From positions 1-64,000 of IMG/VR virus record IMGVR_UViG_3300042566_001512: DNA of 64,000 nucleotides. One strand, written 5' to 3'. The position numbers and the translations under genes were made by a program. Under the pieces are notes generated by a model that ran no database searches, had not been told where the DNA came from, and was given only the letters and a program-made list of their open reading frames with translations. Positions 387 to 48,281 of this stretch are shown here, one piece after another; the stretch's first letter is position 1; every line of letters starts with the position of its first letter.

Positions 387-2513
387 ATGATTTTGTTTTT
401 AAATGACTGGCAACGTTACCCACGAGCGGTTATTCATTGGGAGACTAAAAACACCAGTTATCTGGACATGGCCGCAAAATACAAATCAGTCGGCATAGAA
501 AATAATTTCTTTTTTCTGGCTCTACATAATCCAGAGTTAAAACATGTTAATGCACACGAGGATAATCTCCCTCTCAGAATCAAAACTTTAATAGCCATAG
601 AGTGCCGGCAAAACCCGTGGTACTACTTTAGAGAGGTAGCTAGGGCGCCAGCGATTGCGGGTACTAAATCTGGGCCCGTTCTGGCTAACCGCTCCACTAT
701 AGCCCTGTGGTGGTGCTTCTTCAATCACATTACTATTATATTGACGCAACCTCGTCAGACAGGTAAATCTTTTGCAACAGACCAGTTGATGACAGCACTG
801 TTAAACTTCGTCTGCAATAACACCCAGATTAATTTATTGACCAAGGACGATACTTTAAGATCTGCTAACATTGCTAGACTTAAAGATATATACGACGAAT
901 TACCAGGATATCTGAAATTTAAAGATAAAACGGATACAAACAATACGGAGTCCGTAACAATCAACAGATTCAATAACAAGTACATCGCCCACGTACCTCA
1001 GTCATCTCCAAAAAATGCTTATAAATTAGGACGTGGCCTTACCTCTCCAATAATACAGATAGACGAAGCGCCATTCCAGCCAAACATAGAAATATCCATG
1101 GGCTCTGCTCTTGGCGCAATGGGCGCCGCAATAGACAAAGCAAAAGAAGAGGACGAACCGTACGGCACTATAATAACCACCACCGCTGGTAAGAAAGATG
1201 AACCCAGTGGAAAATATATTTATTCTCTAATTGAAGCTTCTGCTGTATTTGATGAAAAATTTTTTGATGCCATAAATCATGAGCAGCTTAAGAGAATAGT
1301 TTGCTCTAATTCGAGAAAAGGGGCGTTTAGAGTATACGCGTGCTTCTCCCACACGCAGCTAGGTAAAGACGATGAATGGCTAAAAGAGAAGCTAAATAGC
1401 TCTATGCAGTCTCCTGATGACGCAAATAGAGACTTCTTTAACAGATGGACCAGCGGTAGCGAATATTCACCTATAGCCACTGTTTACCTGGAGTCTATGA
1501 CAAACAGCGTAGTAGATGCTAATTACCATGAGATTTTCTCCATAGGAAAATACATAGTCAGATGGTACATAGAAGAGAACAGACTTGATCGTTTCATGAA
1601 CACCAGGAAAGTGGTAATGTCAGTCGACACCAGTGACGCCAGCGGAGGAGATGACATATCAACCACGTTTATAGACGTAGAGACCGGTGCATTAATAGGG
1701 GCAGGTACATATAACGAAACTAATCTAATAACTTACGCACAGTGGCTGGTGTTTATATTAGAAAAGTATGAAAATGTTACACTGATAATAGAAAGAAGAA
1801 GCTCCGCTATAGTTATACTGGATTATCTGCTGCTTCTGTTGGTGGAGAAGGGCATCGATCCTTTTAAGAGAATATTCAATTGGATAGTGAATGAGCCTTT
1901 GGAATACAAAAGCCTATACGAAGAAATTAAACAGCCACTGAGACGCAGGTCCGATGACTTGTACGTGAGAGCAAAGAAATATTTTGGATTCGCAACGAGC
2001 GGATCAGGAAGACAGAGTAGATCTGAGCTTTATTCTACTACTTTGCAGCATGCCGTAAAACGATGTTCTGATAAAATGTACGATCGCGTATTAGTGAACC
2101 AAATTACAGGTCTAATTATAAAGAACGGAAGAATAGATCACCGTGACGGAGAAAACGACGACATGGTCATCGCCTATCTGCTAGCTCACTGGTTCATTAC
2201 CTCTGCTAAAAACTTGATCCATTACGGAATAGATCCTACCAGAGTACTGGTAGAGTCTAAGCCACAACAGGTAATAGAGCCCAAGAAAATGTATTTCCAC
2301 GCGGAGCAGCAAAGAATACGATCTCGTATACAGGAAATATACGAACGACTTCAAATTGAAAAAGACTCTAACATTTGCAAAATGTACGAAAGAGAATTAA
2401 TTTTTCTAGATTCTAAAATAGTTCTTCAAGAAGGCGAACATTATTCAGTTGATGCCATAATAAAAGAGGCAGAGAACTCCAGAAAGAGCAGAACTGTAGG
2501 TTATTCTAAATAG
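387..2513 (+). CDS. terL: Terminase large subunit (phiKZ gp25-like)
   Basis: Walker A PRQTGKS, Walker B IQIDEA, motif III TTT, nuclease motif SVDTS, C-terminal NDDMVIAY; 708 aa. Confidence 0.93.
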   Translation: MILFLNDWQRYPRAVIHWETKNTSYLDMAAKYKSVGIENNFFFLALHNPELKHVNAHEDNLPLRIKTLIAIECRQNPWYYFREVARAPAIAGTKSGPVLANRSTIALWWCFFNHITIILTQPRQTGKSFATDQLMTALLNFVCNNTQINLLTKDDTLRSANIARLKDIYDELPGYLKFKDKTDTNNTESVTINRFNNKYIAHVPQSSPKNAYKLGRGLTSPIIQIDEAPFQPNIEISMGSALGAMGAAIDKAKEEDEPYGTIITTTAGKKDEPSGKYIYSLIEASAVFDEKFFDAINHEQLKRIVCSNSRKGAFRVYACFSHTQLGKDDEWLKEKLNSSMQSPDDANRDFFNRWTSGSEYSPIATVYLESMTNSVVDANYHEIFSIGKYIVRWYIEENRLDRFMNTRKVVMSVDTSDASGGDDISTTFIDVETGALIGAGTYNETNLITYAQWLVFILEKYENVTLIIERRSSAIVILDYLLLLLVEKGIDPFKRIFNWIVNEPLEYKSLYEEIKQPLRRRSDDLYVRAKKYFGFATSGSGRQSRSELYSTTLQHAVKRCSDKMYDRVLVNQITGLIIKNGRIDHRDGENDDMVIAYLLAHWFITSAKNLIHYGIDPTRVLVESKPQQVIEPKKMYFHAEQQRIRSRIQEIYERLQIEKDSNICKMYERELIFLDSKIVLQEGEHYSVDAIIKEAENSRKSRTVGYSK

Positions 2514-14426: not shown

Positions 14427-16289
14427 ATGGCAATTACCGATACCAACAAAGTCAACGCTCTGCAATCGCAACTGAGCGGCGCTAACATGAATCAACAACC
14501 ACAGCAGCAGTCTTCTGCACCGGCCCCAATGAGCTTCATGAACCTGGGGTACAACTTCGGCCTGACGCGGTCCACCACCGACGAAGCCCTTTCGCGCGCT
14601 CTTGCCGTCTTCAAGGAAGACATCAAGAAGCAATTTGAAGATCGAAAGATCGATCCCTCTTTTGAGATCAGTCTTCTGGCCGTCGATTCCAGCAAGGGCA
14701 CGGGTGTTCGTTTCTCTGGCATCGTGGTAGCCACTACCCACAAGGAAATTCCTCAGTCTGTGGCCATTCATACGGTGCTGGTGGAGGGCTCTTCTGACCC
14801 CATCGTTCCGAAGATCGAATCGGCACGCGGTGTTCAATACGAGGTCATGTTGACTGCCGGCGACACGATCGACCGCACCTACGTCGAGGAAGTTCGACGG
14901 ACGGTGGAAAAGGCCTACCCTGGCTATCGCGTGATCAACGCCGATGCTCAAGTGCTGCATCGCGATTTCAACTACGAAGACAAGAACCAGGTGCGCACAT
15001 TTGTGCAAAACTTCGTTCTTCCCACCACCACCATGCTGGTGACCAGCGCACAGGGCTTCCAAGACCTGAACCTGGGCCGCATTGAACGAGACACCTCTAT
15101 TGGTGTTCAGCGCTCCTTCAACGAAAACCAGATGCTGGACTACTCCGGCCACCCGGTCCGTACAGACATCAAGGTTACGGTGAGTGCGTATACTGGTCAA
15201 AAGGGACAGAGCGGTTCGCTAAATACCCAGGAGCAATCTCGGGTGCTGGCTATCGTGGGTGGTTATATCGACACGGTTTGGTCTGACGAAGCCGTATCCC
15301 CGATGACGAACATGATGATGGGCCCGAAGCCCAAGTTCAGGGCTCGCCTGGTGATGACTGCGCTGGAAAACCAAGCAATGCAGACCATCCCTGCTCAGCT
15401 GTTTGCGCTTTCGGGTTCCATGATCCTTCGGGAAGGTAATAACTGGTTCTCCTACTTCACTCCTCGTCGCCTTGCGGCAGGTGCGCATCGTGTCGATAAG
15501 CGTGACGTCGGCGCTCTCAACATCGAGGGAAATATTTCTAATGACCCGAGCGGCTTTGATAAGCTTTTCGATACAAAGGATTCTGGCTTTGACGGAATGG
15601 CTCTTCAGCGTTACATCACCAGCCTGTTCATCCCCGGTATGTACTTTACTCTTCGTGTCAGCGAAGCTGGAGCAGATACCTGGTACAACAGCGTCTTCAA
15701 AGCGGCGGCAGACGGTAACCCGAGTGCCATTTCCGCCATTCTGGCAGGTGCCAACACTCTGACCAACGGCAACTTCCAGAAGTTCTACACTTCGGGCTCG
15801 TCGCCCGTTCTGAAGAACGAAGATCGTGTTCACATGGGCTACTACGTAGACGCCAACGGTGTTAAGTGCGACATCGCTGACATCGACTACATCGCCATCA
15901 TGAATCTGGTTGGCCGAAACGACCCCAGCGTCGGTGCAGCTTGGTCCAATACTTTCTATGCAACAAACGAACCCCTTAACGTTCGTATGGCCGCACGCTG
16001 GAAGATGATCAATGAAGTTGTCGGCGGTACCGCTGTCCTCACCGGATACGGTCGTCTGGTGACCTTCACCAACGAGTTCATTGAAGCCTTTAGCAAGGCA
16101 GTAGCAGCCACCGGCCTGACCATTCGTCAGATTGGTAACAACGATAGCGCGCTGTTCCAACAGCGCGCTGGCGCGAGCTTCCTGGCTGGCGCTGACGTTG
16201 CACCTGGTCAGACCGGGCTGTTTAACTACGGTTCGGGCATTCCTGCACAGCAGTCTGGTGGTTTTGCGTTTAACCAACGCACCTACTGA
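14427..16289 (+). CDS. chmA: Chimallin, major phage nuclear shell protein
   Basis: 620 aa; strong RBS; GC-rich codon usage suggesting high expression; directly upstream of nvRNAP beta'-N as with phiKZ gp54; GHPVRTD and RVHMGYY motifs. Confidence 0.85.
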   Translation: MAITDTNKVNALQSQLSGANMNQQPQQQSSAPAPMSFMNLGYNFGLTRSTTDEALSRALAVFKEDIKKQFEDRKIDPSFEISLLAVDSSKGTGVRFSGIVVATTHKEIPQSVAIHTVLVEGSSDPIVPKIESARGVQYEVMLTAGDTIDRTYVEEVRRTVEKAYPGYRVINADAQVLHRDFNYEDKNQVRTFVQNFVLPTTTMLVTSAQGFQDLNLGRIERDTSIGVQRSFNENQMLDYSGHPVRTDIKVTVSAYTGQKGQSGSLNTQEQSRVLAIVGGYIDTVWSDEAVSPMTNMMMGPKPKFRARLVMTALENQAMQTIPAQLFALSGSMILREGNNWFSYFTPRRLAAGAHRVDKRDVGALNIEGNISNDPSGFDKLFDTKDSGFDGMALQRYITSLFIPGMYFTLRVSEAGADTWYNSVFKAAADGNPSAISAILAGANTLTNGNFQKFYTSGSSPVLKNEDRVHMGYYVDANGVKCDIADIDYIAIMNLVGRNDPSVGAAWSNTFYATNEPLNVRMAARWKMINEVVGGTAVLTGYGRLVTFTNEFIEAFSKAVAATGLTIRQIGNNDSALFQQRAGASFLAGADVAPGQTGLFNYGSGIPAQQSGGFAFNQRTY

Positions 16290-16366: not shown

Positions 16367-16407
16367 TTGTGCTTTGTATTTTTAATTCCAATGCAAAAGG
16401 AAAGACA

Positions 16408-17655
16408 ATGGGTGTACATTTAGAGCACGTGAACTTTGATGACGAGTTCAGTAGGCTAAACTTTAGTCCTATCATTATTAATGACTGCCCAACGGTAACT
16501 TCTCAGCAAAAAGATTTTTTGGACAATCTAATCTATAAACGATTTGAAAGCGATCTGCTTTCAAATGAGCCAAAGTGCGAATGCGGGGAAATGACTGGCA
16601 GATACAGACTAGGTAGCGTTTGTCCAAACTGCCAAACTGCCGTACAAGACGAAATGGAACAGGAGCTTCGGCCGATGGTCTGGATCAGATCTCCTGTTGG
16701 CGTGCAACGTTTAATTAATCCTATAATTTTGTTAAAGCTCGTCAGACATTTTAACAAGAGTAACTTTAGTCTGATCGAGTGGCTAATTAACACCGACTAC
16801 GTATCAAGCGGACAGAAGCCAGCTTATCTTGACCATTTGCTATCTATGGACGTTAAGCGCGGTTATAACAACTTCGTGTCCAAAATTGAAGAATATATAA
16901 ATCTAATATTTGACATCAAGACATTTAAGCCTAAAAAGGGAAGTTACGATCCGCTTTACTATCTGGTGATTAAGGCACTCAAAGAAGGCACCCTACTAAG
17001 TCACCATATCCCTCTTATCAACAGGAGCCTGTTGGTTATTGAGGAGACCAAGGTGGGTAAGTGGGTGGACCCTATAGTGATGGGCGCCATAGATGCAATC
17101 AGGACGGTATCGAGCATAGACGACCCGATTATGGCGTTTACGTCTAGGCAAAAGGAAAACAGAATAGCAAAGTCCTTACTCGCCCTTAGTAACTACTACC
17201 GGGACATGCTGGATGAAGTTCTATCTGGAAAGCCAGGAATGTTTCGCAAACACGTGTTTGGCACGCGTACAAACTTTGCGATGCGAAACGTTATTGCTTC
17301 TCTGACAAAGAATCACAGATACGACGAATTGCATATTCCATGGGGTGCGGCAGTAACCACATTTAAACTGCACCTAATTAATAAATTGCTAAAAAGGGGG
17401 TTTACGTCAAACCAAGCAACCGCTCTGCTAAACCAGTGCGTATATACGTTTGACCCTTTGGTAAAGCAATTATTCGATGAGCTGTTTTCCGAGTCTAGGG
17501 ATGGCGGCTTTGCTTGCATATTTCAACGTAATCCTAGCCTGAGCAGAGGATCTGCGCAACGGATGTGGATAACGAAAGTAAAGACGGATCCTGACGATCC
17601 CACAATTTTGTTGAGTATCCTGTCAACAAAATCGTACAATGCCGATTTTGACGGT
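16408..17655 (+). CDS. Non-virion RNAP beta' N-terminal subunit, exon 1 (phiKZ gp55-like)
   Basis: Zn finger CECG…CPNC, GKPGMFRKHVFG, QRNPSL, ends YNADFDG; spliced product about 490 aa. Confidence 0.9.
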
Positions 17656-18379
17656 AAACCTAAATTGCCGTATTTAAACCTTTTTAACTGCGGGAAAGCC
17701 CTTAGAGCTTCGTCTACCAAGCCAGAGCAGAAATGTATCTGGTGGCCAGCGTAATTAACTGGGTATGGTAAAAATGGCGAAGATTGGGTAATCCGCAGCG
17801 AAGTCTCACGTATTCAGTATTGGTAACATAGCAAAGGAGCAAAAGATGACTGTAATCCAAATCAATACTGAAGATCAACTGTATAGTGCAATTCAGAACT
17901 CAATAGGTAAAAGCCGTTGCAAAAAGGTGCGAGTAATGGAGAACGGGAAGTCATACGAGGACTATTCCATCAGCTATACTCTTGCTCCAGTAAAAGCCAT
18001 TGCTAACTTCACTATCGATATTGAAGACGGTAACGTCGTCATTAAGAAGAAAGCAAAAACCAGCACACGGCACGTCCTGTTCAAAGCGGGGTCTATGGTG
18101 GAGATAAGTATAGCGAACAAAAAGGCACCTTATCTGAAAGTAAACGTGCTAAACGAGGTTCGCTACACAGACGGCACGCACCGATATCAAAAATGAAAAG
18201 CACTGAATCCGTGAGAAACGTTCAACGACTAGACCGTAAGGTCGTACACTCAAGTGAGTGGAAATGGAAGGTACGTCGCAATTCTAACTGCGACGTAAAG
18301 AGATAGTCTGGACTGTGCGGAAACGTACAGAAGCTGAAAAACAGCTCAAGTAGATTAACGACCTATTTGTAACTTATCG
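17656..18379 (+). mobile_element. Group I intron (IA2-like) inside the catalytic NADFDG|D motif
   Basis: P1 acggtaa/ttgccgt with U-G at splice site; P AACTGCGGGAAA 17686; Q AATCCGCAGC 17790; R GTTCAACGACTA 18220; S AGAGATAGTC; P7 GACTA/TAGTC; P7.1, P7.2, P8, P9; terminal G 18379; splicing restores NADFDGDQMN. Confidence 0.93.
17846..18196 (+). CDS. Intron-encoded 116-aa basic protein, no recognisable homing-endonuclease motif
   Basis: AAAGGAG RBS; lies in the P6 loop closed by tctcacg-attcagt/actgaat-cgtgaga. Confidence 0.8.
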   Translation: MTVIQINTEDQLYSAIQNSIGKSRCKKVRVMENGKSYEDYSISYTLAPVKAIANFTIDIEDGNVVIKKKAKTSTRHVLFKAGSMVEISIANKKAPYLKVNVLNEVRYTDGTHRYQK

Positions 18380-18604
18380 GATCAAATGAACTTAACTTTG
18401 TGTTTGGATAATGAAGCGGCCGATCAGGCAGAGCCACTTTCCCCTCACAAAAACCTACTGGACATTCACAACCCCAGAAAGCTAAGCGGAATCGCGGCTC
18501 TGCCGAAACCGGTGGTAAGTACCATTGCCCATTGGCTACACAGGCCAAGGGATTTGCCGGTTGAAGAAAGACACACTTCTTTCTTAAATAGCATATCGAC
18601 GTAG
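18380..18604 (+). CDS. nvRNAP beta' N-terminal subunit, exon 2
   Basis: DQMNLTLCLD…LSPHKN completes the catalytic motif. Confidence 0.88.
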   Translation, partial: DQMNLTLCLDNEAADQAEPLSPHKNLLDIHNPRKLSGIAALPKPVVSTIAHWLHRPRDLPVEERHTSFLNSIST

Positions 18605-18614
18605 AGGGAAACAA

Positions 18615-19232
18615 ATGCACTCATTTACAGCCGATGATGCGTTTAACGCATTCATTTATCCAGAGAAAAACGCTGGAGGTCTGCAATACCTGAAAAATCA
18701 ATTCAATAATTTTACCGGAGTGATGACTAACACCGCTCAGGACTTTATAAAGAAGAGTCGTGAGCAGTTTGAGCGCTTTAACAGTAGCGCGGCCATTGAG
18801 TTTGCCAGAAACATGGTGAAGTCCGTAATCGGAACCGTGGACGTTAGTACCGACAGAATTACTACGTTATGGGAAGTCAATCATTTTCAATGCGCGTCGA
18901 TCCCTATGCAGCGGTGGGTTATGGCCAATCCTGAGGTACGAGAACTGTATCACCGGCAAGGCTGTGAAGGCTATAGCGACACGTACGTCGATATGCAACC
19001 CAAAGTAAAGGGAGAGGAACATTATGACTACCGAAGGGTCATGGATGGCGTAATGCGGTTTGACGACGATAAGGGATGGTTTGCCAAGATATACGTAGAG
19101 GATCTGGTAGATGGAGACAGAGACCTGACTCACGGGGAAAAGCAGGACGTTCTGCAGACTTGGTCTAAACTCGAGTACCTTATTGCGATTGGAAAAGACG
19201 ATCCTACGAGTCCGGATGGCGGATATCTGTAA
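18615..19232 (+). CDS. Conserved hypothetical protein (phiKZ gp59-like; possibly Imp3)
   Basis: 205 aa with YDYRRVMDG and DDPTS; synteny. Confidence 0.55.
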   Translation: MHSFTADDAFNAFIYPEKNAGGLQYLKNQFNNFTGVMTNTAQDFIKKSREQFERFNSSAAIEFARNMVKSVIGTVDVSTDRITTLWEVNHFQCASIPMQRWVMANPEVRELYHRQGCEGYSDTYVDMQPKVKGEEHYDYRRVMDGVMRFDDDKGWFAKIYVEDLVDGDRDLTHGEKQDVLQTWSKLEYLIAIGKDDPTSPDGGYL

Positions 19233-19247
19233 ACAATGACGACAAAA

Positions 19248-19290
19248 AATGCCGGTATGGAAACACCATACCGGCATTATTAAATTTTTT
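19248..19290 (+). terminator. Hairpin terminator
   Basis: aatgccggtatgg/ccataccggcatt followed by T-rich tract. Confidence 0.65.
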
Positions 19291-19314
19291 TGTAAAGAAA
19301 GGCTTTGAATTAAA

Positions 19315-19740
19315 ATGGTTAGTTTCCCAGTAACACCGGTGCCAACTTTGTCTACACAAGGATGGGTAACTGATCCGTCTACAAAGTTCGATAAACTATT
19401 GTCTGATTTCTTTTTAGCGGATCATAACCAGACATACATCTATAAAGGTAGCGTAAGAAGCCTTCAGGGCCTTATAGAAAAACACGGATCTTCTATACAG
19501 GGTCTAATTGAAGATCTTACCTCTAGTCTAAAAGTGTACCTCGAGAGATACTACGATCTTGTGGAAATAAGTATATTGCCGGCCAATGACGTTTACCTTG
19601 ACCCCAGAGCCAGGATGGAATTGAAGATCTCAATTGGTGTAAATGACAAGGGTACTCAAGCACAGTACTCCAAGTTATTGCAGGCAAAAGACAGCGCCAT
19701 GCAAAGTATATCAAACCTCAACGATGGCGTTTCTCAATAA
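19315..19740 (+). CDS. Conserved hypothetical protein (phiKZ gp62-like)
   Basis: 141 aa, PTLSTQGW N-terminus. Confidence 0.6.
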   Translation: MVSFPVTPVPTLSTQGWVTDPSTKFDKLLSDFFLADHNQTYIYKGSVRSLQGLIEKHGSSIQGLIEDLTSSLKVYLERYYDLVEISILPANDVYLDPRARMELKISIGVNDKGTQAQYSKLLQAKDSAMQSISNLNDGVSQ

Positions 19741-19867
19741 AAATACAAAAAACACTTAACATATGGTGAAAAACGGTGGAGTAAGTGGTAAAGAAAATAC
19801 GTCTCTAACACTTAACGCTCCGTTTACATTGTTTTATGACATATTTAAATTCTTAGGAGATCTACAC

Positions 19868-20431
19868 ATGGAAAACCCCGCTTCCAAAAGCATGAACGAA
19901 ATACAGACCGAAATGCTCAAAGGTCAGATTAAGACAATAAAAGAGCAATTTCAAAAACTAGATAAACTGGATGTGAGAACTATACCTGAGGCTATTTTTG
20001 TTCATCATTTCTTGCCGGTGTTTAGCGGAGAGAGAAAAGAGAACGCTCAAGAATCTCTTGCCATGTGGGTAAATATTGCTGGCAGTAACTTTCATCCAGT
20101 AAATATAGTAAACCCAAAGGGTGAGGTGGTTGCACAAGTCCCCCCTTTGCAAAATAACGCTGTTCTGGACCCTTCGTCCAGTAAAAGTAACCTAAGTTAT
20201 GCAGTACAAGAGTCTAACGCAAGGGCTGGGCTGTCTCCGTTGGGATCGCAGACAATTCTAACTAACCAGCTTACAAATAAATTAAACGCGTTAACTTCCG
20301 AAATAGACGCCAAAAATGTTCCACATGAAAAGATGTGGAAAGACTTGCTAACAAAATACGGCAAGGAACCTAAAAATACCCAACAAAAAGAAATCAATAA
20401 TCAGGCAGAAGGAGACCCTTTTGGTTTCTGA
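19868..20431 (+). CDS. Hypothetical protein
   Basis: ATG 19868 with AGGAG RBS. Confidence 0.7.
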   Translation: MENPASKSMNEIQTEMLKGQIKTIKEQFQKLDKLDVRTIPEAIFVHHFLPVFSGERKENAQESLAMWVNIAGSNFHPVNIVNPKGEVVAQVPPLQNNAVLDPSSSKSNLSYAVQESNARAGLSPLGSQTILTNQLTNKLNALTSEIDAKNVPHEKMWKDLLTKYGKEPKNTQQKEINNQAEGDPFGF

Positions 20432-21560
20432 TCAGATAAGAATAGCCTCTATAAGCGACATACATTTATTACATAAAAACAATAAGACACCGGCTATACT
20501 AAGCAATCTAGATAAGTATCTATGCACAGATGAGCTACTGAGTAAGGTAGATATACTTTTCATAGCCGGTGATTTATTCGACGGACCTGTTCCTTTTTCA
20601 AATGAATACATTGGCCTAATAAATGTATGGATAGCTAAGTTACTGCATAAGTGTAAGAGATACAACGTATGCCTTAGGATATTGGAAGGAACACCCTCCC
20701 ACGACATGGGGCAATCAAAAATATTTTGTAATATAAACGAGATACTGTTCAAGGAAGGCGAAACGGTAGATCTTCAATATGTAAAAACTCTAAGCGTTGA
20801 ATACATAGAAAGGTTTGGAATTAACGTCTTATATGTTCCAGACGAATGGAATCACGATACAAACGACACTTACATAGAAGTAAAAGAAATATTAAACACA
20901 AAAGGTATAACGAAAGTAGACTTTGCAGTAATGCACGGTCAGTTCGAGTATCAGTTGTCAGATGTAGTAAAAAGCCACGTAAAGCACGACTCTTCTTTGT
21001 ATTTAAGTTTAGTTAATTATCTAATCTTCATTGGGCATATTCACAAATACTCAAAGAAAGATAGAATATATAGTCACGGCAGTTTTGACCGGCTAGCCCA
21101 TAATGAGGAAGAGTCAAAAGGATTCATATATGCTACCGTATTTAAAGACGGTAGCCACACATGCCAATTTATTGAAAATAAGACTGCCAGAATATACAAA
21201 ACAATAAATTGCACAAGCCAGGACATGGAATTAAACCTTAAACGAATAGAGGCAGTGGTAAAAAAACTACCAGACGATTCGTTTGTAAGGATAATAGCCG
21301 ATCAGGATAACTCAATAATGAGCGCGGCGGAGACCATAAAGAAACGTTGGATAAACATAAATTGGTCTTTTGCAAAAGCAAAAGAAACCAGTAAAACCGA
21401 CGTAGCCAGCGCATACAGTCAAGAAGAAAAATATACGCCTATAATCATAAATAAAGATAGCATAAGGAACTTAATATATCCAAGGATTAGTAAGGTTTCT
21501 ATGCCAGAAGACGTCATGAATAGATGTCTTTACTATATTAGCGAAATGGAGAAAGGGTAA
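20421..21560 (+). CDS. sbcD: SbcD/Mre11-like metallophosphoesterase nuclease
   Basis: SDIH, AGDLFD, GTPSHD, MHG and GHIH motifs. Confidence 0.88.
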   Translation: MVSDQIRIASISDIHLLHKNNKTPAILSNLDKYLCTDELLSKVDILFIAGDLFDGPVPFSNEYIGLINVWIAKLLHKCKRYNVCLRILEGTPSHDMGQSKIFCNINEILFKEGETVDLQYVKTLSVEYIERFGINVLYVPDEWNHDTNDTYIEVKEILNTKGITKVDFAVMHGQFEYQLSDVVKSHVKHDSSLYLSLVNYLIFIGHIHKYSKKDRIYSHGSFDRLAHNEEESKGFIYATVFKDGSHTCQFIENKTARIYKTINCTSQDMELNLKRIEAVVKKLPDDSFVRIIADQDNSIMSAAETIKKRWININWSFAKAKETSKTDVASAYSQEEKYTPIIINKDSIRNLIYPRISKVSMPEDVMNRCLYYISEMEKG

Positions 21561-46133: not shown

Positions 46134-46455
46134 TTAAATATTTTTATTGAACGCTTCTAACATCTGATCCAGGTTAGGCATTCCCAACAGATTAGTGCAA
46201 ATCTCTACTGCGTTTACGTGTCCAGCGGAAAGATTTATGGTGCACATTCTTTTTGTATGTTCATCTACTCCTTCTACTGAGGATAACTCTTTTTTAGTAG
46301 TTTCCTTTGAGATGTTTAATGCTATCCCTCCATTAGGGTAAGACCCAGCAACGTCAAGGTCAACGGCACCGATTCTTATATTAGTCCTTAAATTTGGGTT
46401 TTCTTTTATTAAACAAATCCCATTATCATCAACCAGATATGATTGTAACATAACA
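46134..46455 (-). CDS. DNA polymerase exonuclease/motif-A subunit, exon 2
   Basis: PolB motif A DLDVAGSYP, ALNISKET. Confidence 0.82.
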
Positions 46456-46858
46456 CTATATTGTTCAGACAGATTCGCTACTACCTATCCCGCATTTCTA
46501 AATGCGAAAGCTACATGTCTCCATGTAGAACAGACCATATCTTCGCCCATTTATGGCGGATACCTTTTCCACTTGGCTTCAAGTGTACTCCCTGGGATGG
46601 GATGGTCGTTGAACCTTACGCGTATCCTGCTTCACAGCGGTATTTAGCGTCTTGGCTGCTGATTGTCTCTATTCAATTAATTTTCAAACCTTTTCGCATA
46701 GACTTTCGTCTTTCGTTTTGGTCTAATTGACTTGGCGAGAGTTTCCAGCAATTAAATATCTTTTTCGATGCGAATTTCTGCGCAAAGGGACTGCTGGATA
46801 AAAACAAAAAAACATTCTATTTAAAAGAAAGTTTTTCATATGTTTTTATACCGATTTA
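46456..46858 (-). mobile_element. ORF-less group I intron (IA2-like), 403 nt
   Basis: Minus strand: P AATTGCTGGAAA, Q AATCAGCAGC, R GGTTCAACGACCA, S AAGATATGGTCT, P7 GACCA/TGGTC; exon GGAT|T pairs with AGTCC (plus 46788-92) giving a U-G pair; terminal G 46456; splicing restores GWIVMLQS. Confidence 0.88.
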
Positions 46859-48198
46859 ATCCACCCTGATAATTCAGGAGTAAGGCTATCTAGCTCCGTG
46901 GTCATTTCGCTAGAAACAGAACCTACTACTCTATCGTTGTTCAAGCAAAAATAATGAAGTTTATCAGATGTTCTCTTAGGTTGAGATTTAAAATCACTAA
47001 AATCACTGCAGCCTGTGAATGTTGGCAATGAAAGCGATAGATCGTTAGTTATTTCGTCCAACACCTCCATGGAAATACAGTCGAACATGTTGTAAACTAC
47101 GTATTCTAGAGGATACTTTTCTTGCATTACTTGGTGCCACATTAGGCCGGTATATTCCTTTGTTTGCTCGAACTTTAATTTAGTTATCCCCGCTTTTAAC
47201 TGAAGGATAGAGTCTAGAGCATAGCTGGGCTCTTCTGGTTCCCCGGTCCTCACGTGCTTGTAGGTACACATTGCATCTATCCACGTAAAGGAAGCCGGAG
47301 AGGTAACAGAGTGCCACCTGGCGGCTGGGGGTATGGACATTGTAAGGCCGGACGCTGTAGTCTTTTTTGCTGGGCCCTTTTTAAAGTTAAAAGTCCTGTA
47401 TCGAGCAGGCACCTTTGGATCGTTTAGAATGTCTGCTATGTTTACATTAGCTCTTTCGCAAGCCGATATGATCTTATCCATATCGAATTCGATATTCCAA
47501 ACAGCCAGAAAGTCCGGCATCCACTCGTGCGCTTTGGCCATCGTCAGTTTAACAATATCTATTTCTTTATCTACGACGGCTATCTCTATTTGTATATTTC
47601 TTTCTTTAATGTATTTTTCTAAAATTACATTAGCAATATCTCGTATTCTCTGAACTGCGTTACTCTGACCAGTAAGGAATTTCCTCTGAATCACCGTAAT
47701 TAGCCTGGTCTTATACGAAACAGTGGCCATTACTATTTCACCGGTACCGTGAACGACATCAGTCTCAGTATCAAAAACTGCTACCGAGTACTTAGTGCGC
47801 TTAGTCCATTTATCTGCATATGACTGTTTTATCATAGCGGTTGAACTAATGTCGGTTCCGTAGACATATGGAGAGGCTTGGAGCTTCTTCAAATTACCCT
47901 TAAACCAGGGTGTGCCAAGTGCCGCCGCCACTGACCTAGTTAAATCCGACTGAGTGGATTTGAATTCATTTAAATTTTCAATGTGCTCCCACTCTTTCTT
48001 ATCCTTATGGTTTTGCATTCCCTTTTTAGTAATGAAAAAATTTCTTTTATAATCTATAACCGACCTCAAATTAGGCGCGGTGACTCCATTTTTATAATGC
48101 ACTATTTCTTTGATAAGGTGATAATCGCTATAATCACCCTCTTCAGTCGAGCGACTGTATGTAGCAAATCGGCATTCAATTGCTTCGATGTCGGACAT
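46859..48198 (-). CDS. DNA polymerase 3'-5' exonuclease subunit, exon 1 (phiKZ gp82-like)
   Basis: ExoI FDTETD, ExoII WNIEFD, ExoIII YNMFD; start MSDIE at 48198 with AAAGGA; spliced product about 553 aa. Confidence 0.85.
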
Positions 48199-48281
48199 CG
48201 GGGATCCTTTGTATGAAATGTCTATGACTGAACTCATCAAATTTATCAGGATATATATATATTTAACTTAACAGAGGCGAT

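Follow-up and report, generated by a model that had tools for sequence, protein, structure and literature searches.

The window analysed here is a 64,000-nucleotide stretch (positions 1 to 64,000) of IMG/VR record IMGVR_UViG_3300042566_001512, a 208.8-kb genome of an uncultured chimallivirus from a lake metagenome. It contains a group I intron within the gene for the beta' subunit of a non-virion RNA polymerase (nvRNAP), and this intron carries a 116-aa ORF of unknown fold. Positions of the features and their evidence are given in Table 1.

Intron and host gene at the locus

The nvRNAP beta' gene lies directly after a nuclear shell (chimallin) gene, as phiKZ gp55-type non-virion RNAP beta' genes do, marking the genome as that of a nucleus-forming jumbo phage. 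The homologue in phage Noxifer is annotated as nvRNAP beta', while the closest cultured relative, Burkholderia phage FLC9, is only 43.5% identical in this protein. The two exons match contiguous positions of one PHROG profile and the joined protein reads ...YNADFDG|DQMNLTL, so that removal of the intron restores an uninterrupted reading frame that matches intron-less alleles in FLC9 and in two related loci, L034 and L023 (numbers with the prefix L denote loci of other phage sequences compared here). The intron is thus inserted between the Gly and the last Asp codon of the Mg-binding NADFDGD motif. We infer from the frame and the motif that an active polymerase needs splicing.

A permissive Rfam scan aligned the full group I model (RF00028, positions 1–253) at 49.6 bits and E 2.1e-11, only 0.4 bit under the gathering score of 50. 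The shortfall is due to a 389-nt insertion in the P6 hairpin, which is why a scan of the whole window at the gathering score reported only a second intron elsewhere. Homologous introns in relatives score up to 58 bits. The core structure P3–P9 is present with canonical J8/7 and P7, and the pairing of exon ACGGU with the guide GCCGU gives the expected U.G wobble at the 5' splice site, as in nine related introns. A 31-nt insert with two small hairpins follows GACUA between P7 and P3', resembling P7.1/P7.2, but assignment to the IA type (the sequence-only reading had proposed IA2-like) rests on reading the sequence alone and does not settle the subgroup. The arms of a long P6 stem (duplex dG −25 kcal/mol) hold the two ribozyme halves together and present a loop with the ribosome-binding site and the ORF. 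The same arrangement, with different stem sequences, was found in all ten other introns examined, with duplex dG of −24 to −35 kcal/mol, 2.5–7 sd below shuffled controls.

Table 1 Features of the window and of the related loci, with supporting evidence.
Sequence	Positions	Strand	Feature	Evidence
Window	14427..16289	+	Nuclear shell protein (chimallin) gene	PHROG 4795 'nuclear shell protein', E 1.9e-81; homologues in relatives carry PF25677 Chimallin_Phikzvirus
Window	16369-16407		Start of the listed open frame (GTG 16369); Met 16408 is the more likely start	Family profiles align only from Met 16408
Window	16408..17655	+	Exon 1 of nvRNAP beta'-like subunit, ending ...NADFDG (GAC GGT)	PHROG 2987 (RNA polymerase beta subunit) positions 1-421, E 5e-129; Pfam RNA_pol_Rpb1_2 at the C-terminal end
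Window	17603-18330		Match to RF00028	49.6 bits, E 2.1e-11
Window	17651-17655		Exon bases ACGGU paired in P1; GGT codon at 17653-17655	Sequence
Window	17656-18379		Group I intron	RF00028; exon profiles
Window	17656..17845	+	5' half of ribozyme: P1, P2-P5, 5' arm of P6, loop leader	RF00028 alignment; alignment with 9 related introns; duplex analysis
Window	17667-17671		P1 guide GCCGU	Sequence
Window	17711-17780		70 nt of the P5 extension, replaced in one DNA run	Contig of run X2
Window	17803-17817		5' arm of P6	Duplex analysis
Window	17833..17839	+	Shine-Dalgarno AAAGGAG, 6 nt before the ATG	Sequence; equivalent site in all related introns, AAGGAG-like upstream of every homologue
Window	17846..18196	+	116-aa ORF, ATG start	Homologues, conservation, predicted structure
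Window	17866-18140; 18184-18313		Exact contigs in two RNA libraries	Depth 2-4
Window	18197..18379	+	3' half of ribozyme: 3' arm of P6, P7, two small hairpins (P7.1/P7.2-like), P3', P8, J8/7, P9, two further 3' hairpins	RF00028 alignment; sequence; alignment of related introns
Window	18203-18216		3' arm of P6	Duplex analysis
Window	18213-18267		P7-P3'-P8 core segment attracting unrelated contigs	Depth spikes of 18-85
Window	18220-18231		P7 GUUCAACGACUA	RF00028 alignment; sequence
Window	around 18301-18309		J8/7 AGAUAGUCU	RF00028 alignment; sequence
Window	18379		Terminal G of the intron	Sequence
Window	18380..18604	+	Exon 2 of nvRNAP beta' subunit, starting DQMNLTL...	18380-18601 matches PHROG 2987 positions 422-475, E 1.4e-9; the same exon follows the intron in 8 relatives
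Window	18615-21560		PHROG 3254, PHROG 3294, a 222-aa ORF, SbcD-like nuclease subunit (PHROG 100)	Same order in all related loci, including L023 and L064
Window	46511-46836	-	Second group I intron, 326 nt, without an ORF	RF00028 72 bits, E 2.6e-16
Window	46849-48240; 46137-46451		Exons of the DNA polymerase gene split by the second intron	PHROG 3011 positions 6-462 and 464-567
L021	3342-3344		GGT codon before insertion site GNKG|VV, RNAP beta
L011	2793-2795		GGT codon before insertion site GGIIG|RMNI, RNAP beta
L024	3361-3363		GGT codon before insertion site LVEG|DSAGG, GyrB/topoisomerase II
L062	~2352-2354		GGT codon before insertion site LHAG|GKFD, topoisomerase II large subunit
L016	2617-2619		GGT codon before insertion site GTSCG|KST, primase-helicase
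L062	2021-5339		Topoisomerase II large-subunit gene in at least five pieces	Three strong Rfam hits of 85-98 bits plus the ORF-bearing intron
L016	2914-3300		Open frame of the family ORF, in frame with the helicase exon if spliced at 2919	P-loop restored only by the distal site 3308|3309
L002	3524-4536		Introns around the catalytic motif of nvRNAP beta'
L008	2435-3559		Introns around the catalytic motif of nvRNAP beta'

The observation made in the sequence-only reading, of a group I intron in the RNAP catalytic motif with an intact, probably beta-rich ORF in its P6 loop behind a strong ribosome-binding site, is confirmed in every element. The same intron with the same ORF, stem, and Shine-Dalgarno sequence recurs in eight related loci, which is more than chance. 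Two RNA libraries hold exact contigs over the ORF and the 3' part of the intron but none over the exons, and no spliced joint was seen; at this low depth and with DNA carry-over not excluded, these data do not prove expression or splicing. Mapping of DNA runs with near-identical sequence revealed no intron-less joint. One such run (X2) holds a contig in which 70 nt of the P5 extension are replaced by 37 unrelated letters, suggesting a structural polymorphism of the ribozyme periphery between strains. The P7-P3'-P8 core segment attracted many unrelated contigs in every run examined, indicating that closely similar group I intron cores are abundant in these freshwater and wastewater samples.

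The intron ORF and its predicted structure

Searches for relatives found 14 homologues at 52–100% identity and about 25 more distant cluster representatives down to about 34% identity. The ORF is conserved over its full length (115–118 aa) across loci whose synonymous sites are saturated, while pN is 0.11–0.37. A dN/dS near 1, together with lack of expression, had been named in advance as refuting the proposed readings; we found 0.087 against the closest relative and 0.09–0.2 in the other pairs for which it could be computed, indicating purifying selection. Invariant residues are E38, K68, Y107, D109, G110, R113, and Y114, and near-invariant residues are R29, E32, S36, D39, S43, N54, and H76. 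Motifs of the family are RVxExGKSYED(Y/F)SISYTL, KKAKxSTRH, and YTDGTHRY. The window protein has one Cys, two His, and a pI of 9.6, and the other members are likewise basic (pI about 9.4–9.8) with one exception.

A confident hit to a homing-endonuclease family, or to a DNA-binding remnant of one, was the other outcome specified beforehand as contradicting the proposed readings, and none was obtained with Pfam, PHROGs, PADLOC, a profile search of PDB sequences, Foldseek against PDB, AFDB, and BFVD, or VIA-align. No Pfam, PHROG, or PADLOC family matches the window protein or, consistently, any of 28 members, and PADLOC shows no defence-related family. The profile search of PDB gave nothing below E 0.1, with a best hit of E 0.11 to plasmid Rep proteins that we take as chance. 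A single-sequence AlphaFold model was unusable (pLDDT 39), but a model built from the alignment is confident (pLDDT 85, pTM 0.77) and consists of one helix and about ten strands. It has no neighbour in AFDB clusters or the ESM Atlas, where feature and structure searches returned only unnamed clusters. A prediction of the homodimer gave no answer. Weak phmmer hits to two ~1,900-aa surface proteins with MBG repeats (E about 1e-5, in several short stretches) were judged to be beta-hairpin or compositional similarity. A barnase/T1-type RNase, suggested by the C-terminal TDGTHRY motif, was rejected because no such fold appeared in any structure search.

Features of the established endonuclease classes were examined in turn. 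No Pfam HNH family was found in any of the 28 members; one of the only two His is not invariant, and the model has no beta-beta-alpha-metal element and no fold hit. GIY-YIG, LAGLIDADG, and His-Cys box endonucleases are likewise not supported, given the absence of Pfam matches, the single Cys, and a predicted beta-rich fold that gives no Foldseek or VIA match to them. For PD-(D/E)xK and EDxHD enzymes (I-Ssp6803I, I-Bth0305I), no motif lies in register, as invariant K68 is preceded by hydrophobic residues, and neither the PDB profile search nor the fold searches gave a hit. The only named fold that recurs is the B3/EcoRII-N/BfiI-C DNA-binding pseudobarrel, which is small, basic, mostly beta, and not catalytic. 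These hits are weak (TM 0.3–0.4; best E 0.05, probability 0.92, TM 0.37) and serve as a lead only, leaving membership in this seven-stranded, two-helix barrel class undecided. Decay of a known homing endonuclease to, for example, its DNA-binding module, or a chance ORF, might be suspected from the small size and lack of a catalytic motif. Such an origin is very unlikely, being contradicted by the full-length conservation, the conserved Shine-Dalgarno site, and the absence of any NUMOD, IENR, HTH, or other endonuclease module by Pfam or of a fold match.

The one significant structural hit is BFVD entry G4KKB2, which we take to be g173 of Yersinia phage phiR1-37 (CCE26197.1) because both are 277 aa, an inference not checked further. 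The family profile matches the N-terminal ~125 aa of g173 at E 3.5e-7, and the predicted structures match at TM 0.63. This is the only relative found in a cultured phage; tblastn of the ORF and of a distant member (P0024) against 50,697 phage records gave no match, and g173 was found only by a profile search of phiR1-37. The gene is free-standing and unannotated beside polB and an HNH gene, and its product has a helical C-terminal half and lacks several of the family-invariant residues.

Distribution of the ORF family in phage genomes

Whether homologues occur in other introns or free-standing had been raised as a check on the ORF, and both were found. In eight loci from relatives (L001–L008; RNAP 64–89% identical), the same intron with the same ORF occupies the same G|D site. 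More distant members sit in group I introns at GNKG|VV (L021) and GGIIG|RMNI (L011) of an RNAP beta subunit, at the Toprim motif LVEG|DSAGG of a GyrB/topoisomerase II gene (L024, L013–15), at the ATPase motif LHAG|GKFD of a topoisomerase II large subunit (L062), and at the Walker A loop GTSCG|KST of a primase-helicase (L016). Together with nvRNAP beta', these are six catalytic-motif sites in four kinds of gene. Scans of IMG/VR, metagenome contigs, and prokaryote genomes with family patterns added only L016/L060/L061, L062, and L064. The family is phage-only, with no member found in 185,579 prokaryote genomes.

At the first five sites the ORF lies in the P6 loop of ribozymes that can be aligned with one another and that share a 3' hairpin with a UAACGA loop. 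At the primase-helicase site the ORF lies instead in the 3' tail, after P9, of an intron that gave no BLAST match to the P6-type cores. A splice at the internal P9/G position of this intron would join the helicase exon in frame to the ORF, which we interpret as coincidence because only the distal site restores the P-loop. All six insertion sites directly follow a Gly GGT codon, whereas intron-less alleles of the beta' site mostly read GGC|GAC instead of GGT|GAT. This fits retention of a GCC-type guide sequence and may reflect guide-sequence constraints or the mechanism of transposition.

Free-standing copies occur in three contexts. In L023 the ORF sits immediately after exon 2 of the nvRNAP beta' gene, overlapping the start of the next gene; there the G|D site is empty, and the beta' gene has two introns at nearby sites. 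In L010 it lies between helicase and primase genes with no intron detected within 3.7 kb, and in phiR1-37 it is g173. The conserved order of genes downstream of nvRNAP beta' is what identified the locus in L023 and L064.

In relatives, the same nvRNAP beta' gene carries two to five group I introns within about 40 codons around the catalytic motif (L001, L002, L008, and several in L003 and L004), some with HNH/NUMOD genes. In L002, L003, L004, and L008 the intron upstream of the ORF-bearing one leaves a micro-exon of only 9–12 nt (DFDG or FDG) between two introns. The topoisomerase II gene of L062 is likewise broken by four or more group I introns. HNH genes sit in adjacent introns in L001, L004, L021, and L023, while the beta' gene of the window has only the one intron and no HNH neighbour.

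Recent mobility was not seen within the clade. All eight close loci carry the intron and ORF, ORF and RNAP identities track each other (Pearson 0.81), GC and GC3 of the element equal those of the host gene, and the nearest intron-less allele found is only 53% identical in protein. The element therefore looks fixed and mostly vertically inherited, though with no closer intron-less allele to compare, these loci do not decide whether it still moves. Long retention hints at a use to the phage or the intron.

Candidate roles of the intron-encoded protein

Occurrence in self-splicing introns at conserved sites of several unrelated genes, at two positions within introns, and free-standing beside the same kinds of genes is the distribution expected of homing-endonuclease genes. 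The invariant or near-invariant acidic residues (E32, E38, D39, D109) beside K68, H76, R113, Y107, and Y114 in a basic protein fit a metal-dependent active site better than simple binding. We hypothesize that the protein is the mobility protein of the intron, a small, basic, site-specific DNA endonuclease or nickase of a so far undescribed fold, and consider this the best reading, although about as likely as not. In a mixed infection it would cut the intron-less NADFDG/DQMN-coding DNA of a related phage, and recombinational repair would then copy the intron and gene into that site. It could also harm competitors that cannot repair the cut, as shown for PhiPA3 gp210 (PMC11620839; review PMC12908238). 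Our analysis demonstrates the intron, its exact site, the gene, purifying selection upon it, its lack of any known domain or fold, and its spread across introns, sites, and free-standing positions, whereas nuclease activity, the DNA target, homing, and any role in competition are inferences. Neither cleavage, DNA binding, nor splicing was assayed, no nuclease motif or fold was recognized, and at 116 aa the protein would be smaller than any homing endonuclease of which we are aware.

A splicing factor (maturase or RNA chaperone), which would bind its own ribozyme and be needed for efficient splicing of the polymerase pre-mRNA, appears unlikely but is not excluded. Loss of such a factor would be lethal, which would explain its long retention. 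Purifying selection with apparently vertical descent, the shared P6 position in alignable ribozymes at five of six sites, the basic character of the protein, and the free-standing L023 copy next to a gene with two introns are consistent with a protein co-evolving with the RNA. However, the ribozyme cores match the group I model through P3–P9, one member sits in the 3' tail of a dissimilar intron, and the L010 copy has no detected intron nearby. Phage group I introns studied so far self-splice, the known group I maturases derive from LAGLIDADG proteins, and invariant acidic residues are unusual for a pure RNA binder.

A non-nuclease cargo riding on mobile introns, such as a small B3-like DNA-binding protein or an inhibitor acting on a competitor phage, the host, or a defence system, is also doubtful, though somewhat less so. 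The intron would then move by other means, for example a neighbour's HNH enzyme in trans or reverse splicing guided by the GGU/GCC P1 pairing. The lack of a recognized catalytic motif, the weak but repeated B3 hits, the GGT preceding all six sites (which fits site choice by the ribozyme guide), the HNH genes in adjacent introns of four loci, and the altered, tail-fused domain of g173 are in favor of this alternative. Against it, the window's gene has no HNH neighbour, and a passive cargo would not be expected at two different places within introns and also free-standing next to the same classes of target genes. The interpretation offered by the sequence-only reading (a new endonuclease fold, a maturase or RNA-binding factor, or a retained effector) is thus partly supported, in that comparative data favor the first option without deciding among the three.

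Several known systems provide context. Phage group I introns with homing-endonuclease genes in loops (T4 td/I-TevI and nrdB/I-TevII, SPO1/I-HmuI, Bacillus phage 0305phi8-36 recA/I-Bth0305I) share a ribozyme with IA-type features (in our case read from the sequence alone) at an active-site motif of an essential nucleic-acid enzyme, an ORF with its own ribosome-binding site in a peripheral loop (P6 here), and free-standing relatives beside target genes. Our protein differs in matching none of the LAGLIDADG, GIY-YIG, HNH, His-Cys box, PD-(D/E)xK, or EDxHD families by sequence or predicted fold. PhiPA3 gp210 is also intron-borne within a multisubunit RNAP gene of a nucleus-forming jumbo phage and gives a plausible model for retention through interference with co-infecting relatives, but it is an HNH nickase in the virion RNAP gene (PMC11620839). 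The sequence-only reading had stated that introns in phiKZ-like nvRNAP genes usually encode HNH nucleases, some used against competing phages; this requires the small correction that the weaponised enzyme studied lies in a virion RNAP gene. HNH or NUMOD genes do occur in nvRNAP beta' introns of Goslar and of relatives of this phage. Goslar (MK327938, Goslar_00186-00188) carries an annotated group I intron with a NUMOD1/HNH_3 gene in the same catalytic motif three codons upstream (NAD|F), with the ORF downstream of the ribozyme core. For phiKZ itself, intron endonucleases were predicted at gp56, gp72, and gp179, but no splicing was seen in long-read transcriptomes (PMC10914365). We found no description of the present family in the literature.

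A bolder form of the hypothesis, tentative and rather less likely than not, is that the protein founds a new homing-endonuclease family beside these six. It would be the smallest known, with an all-beta fold unrelated to any solved nuclease, specialised on group I introns that colonise GGT-ending codons in the catalytic motifs of jumbo-phage RNA polymerases, topoisomerases, and helicases, and kept long-term because it also acts as a weapon against co-infecting relatives. Only a handful of homing-endonuclease families are known, each new one has yielded new DNA-recognition chemistry and genome-engineering tools, and a 13-kDa site-specific nuclease or nickase would be attractive on size alone. 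Should the protein prove to be a maturase or a non-nuclease cargo, it would to our knowledge be the first such cargo in a phage group I intron, and just as informative. Biologically, the family marks a set of introns that repeatedly hit the active sites of the transcription and replication enzymes of jumbo phages, which bears on how nucleus-forming phages compete and speciate.
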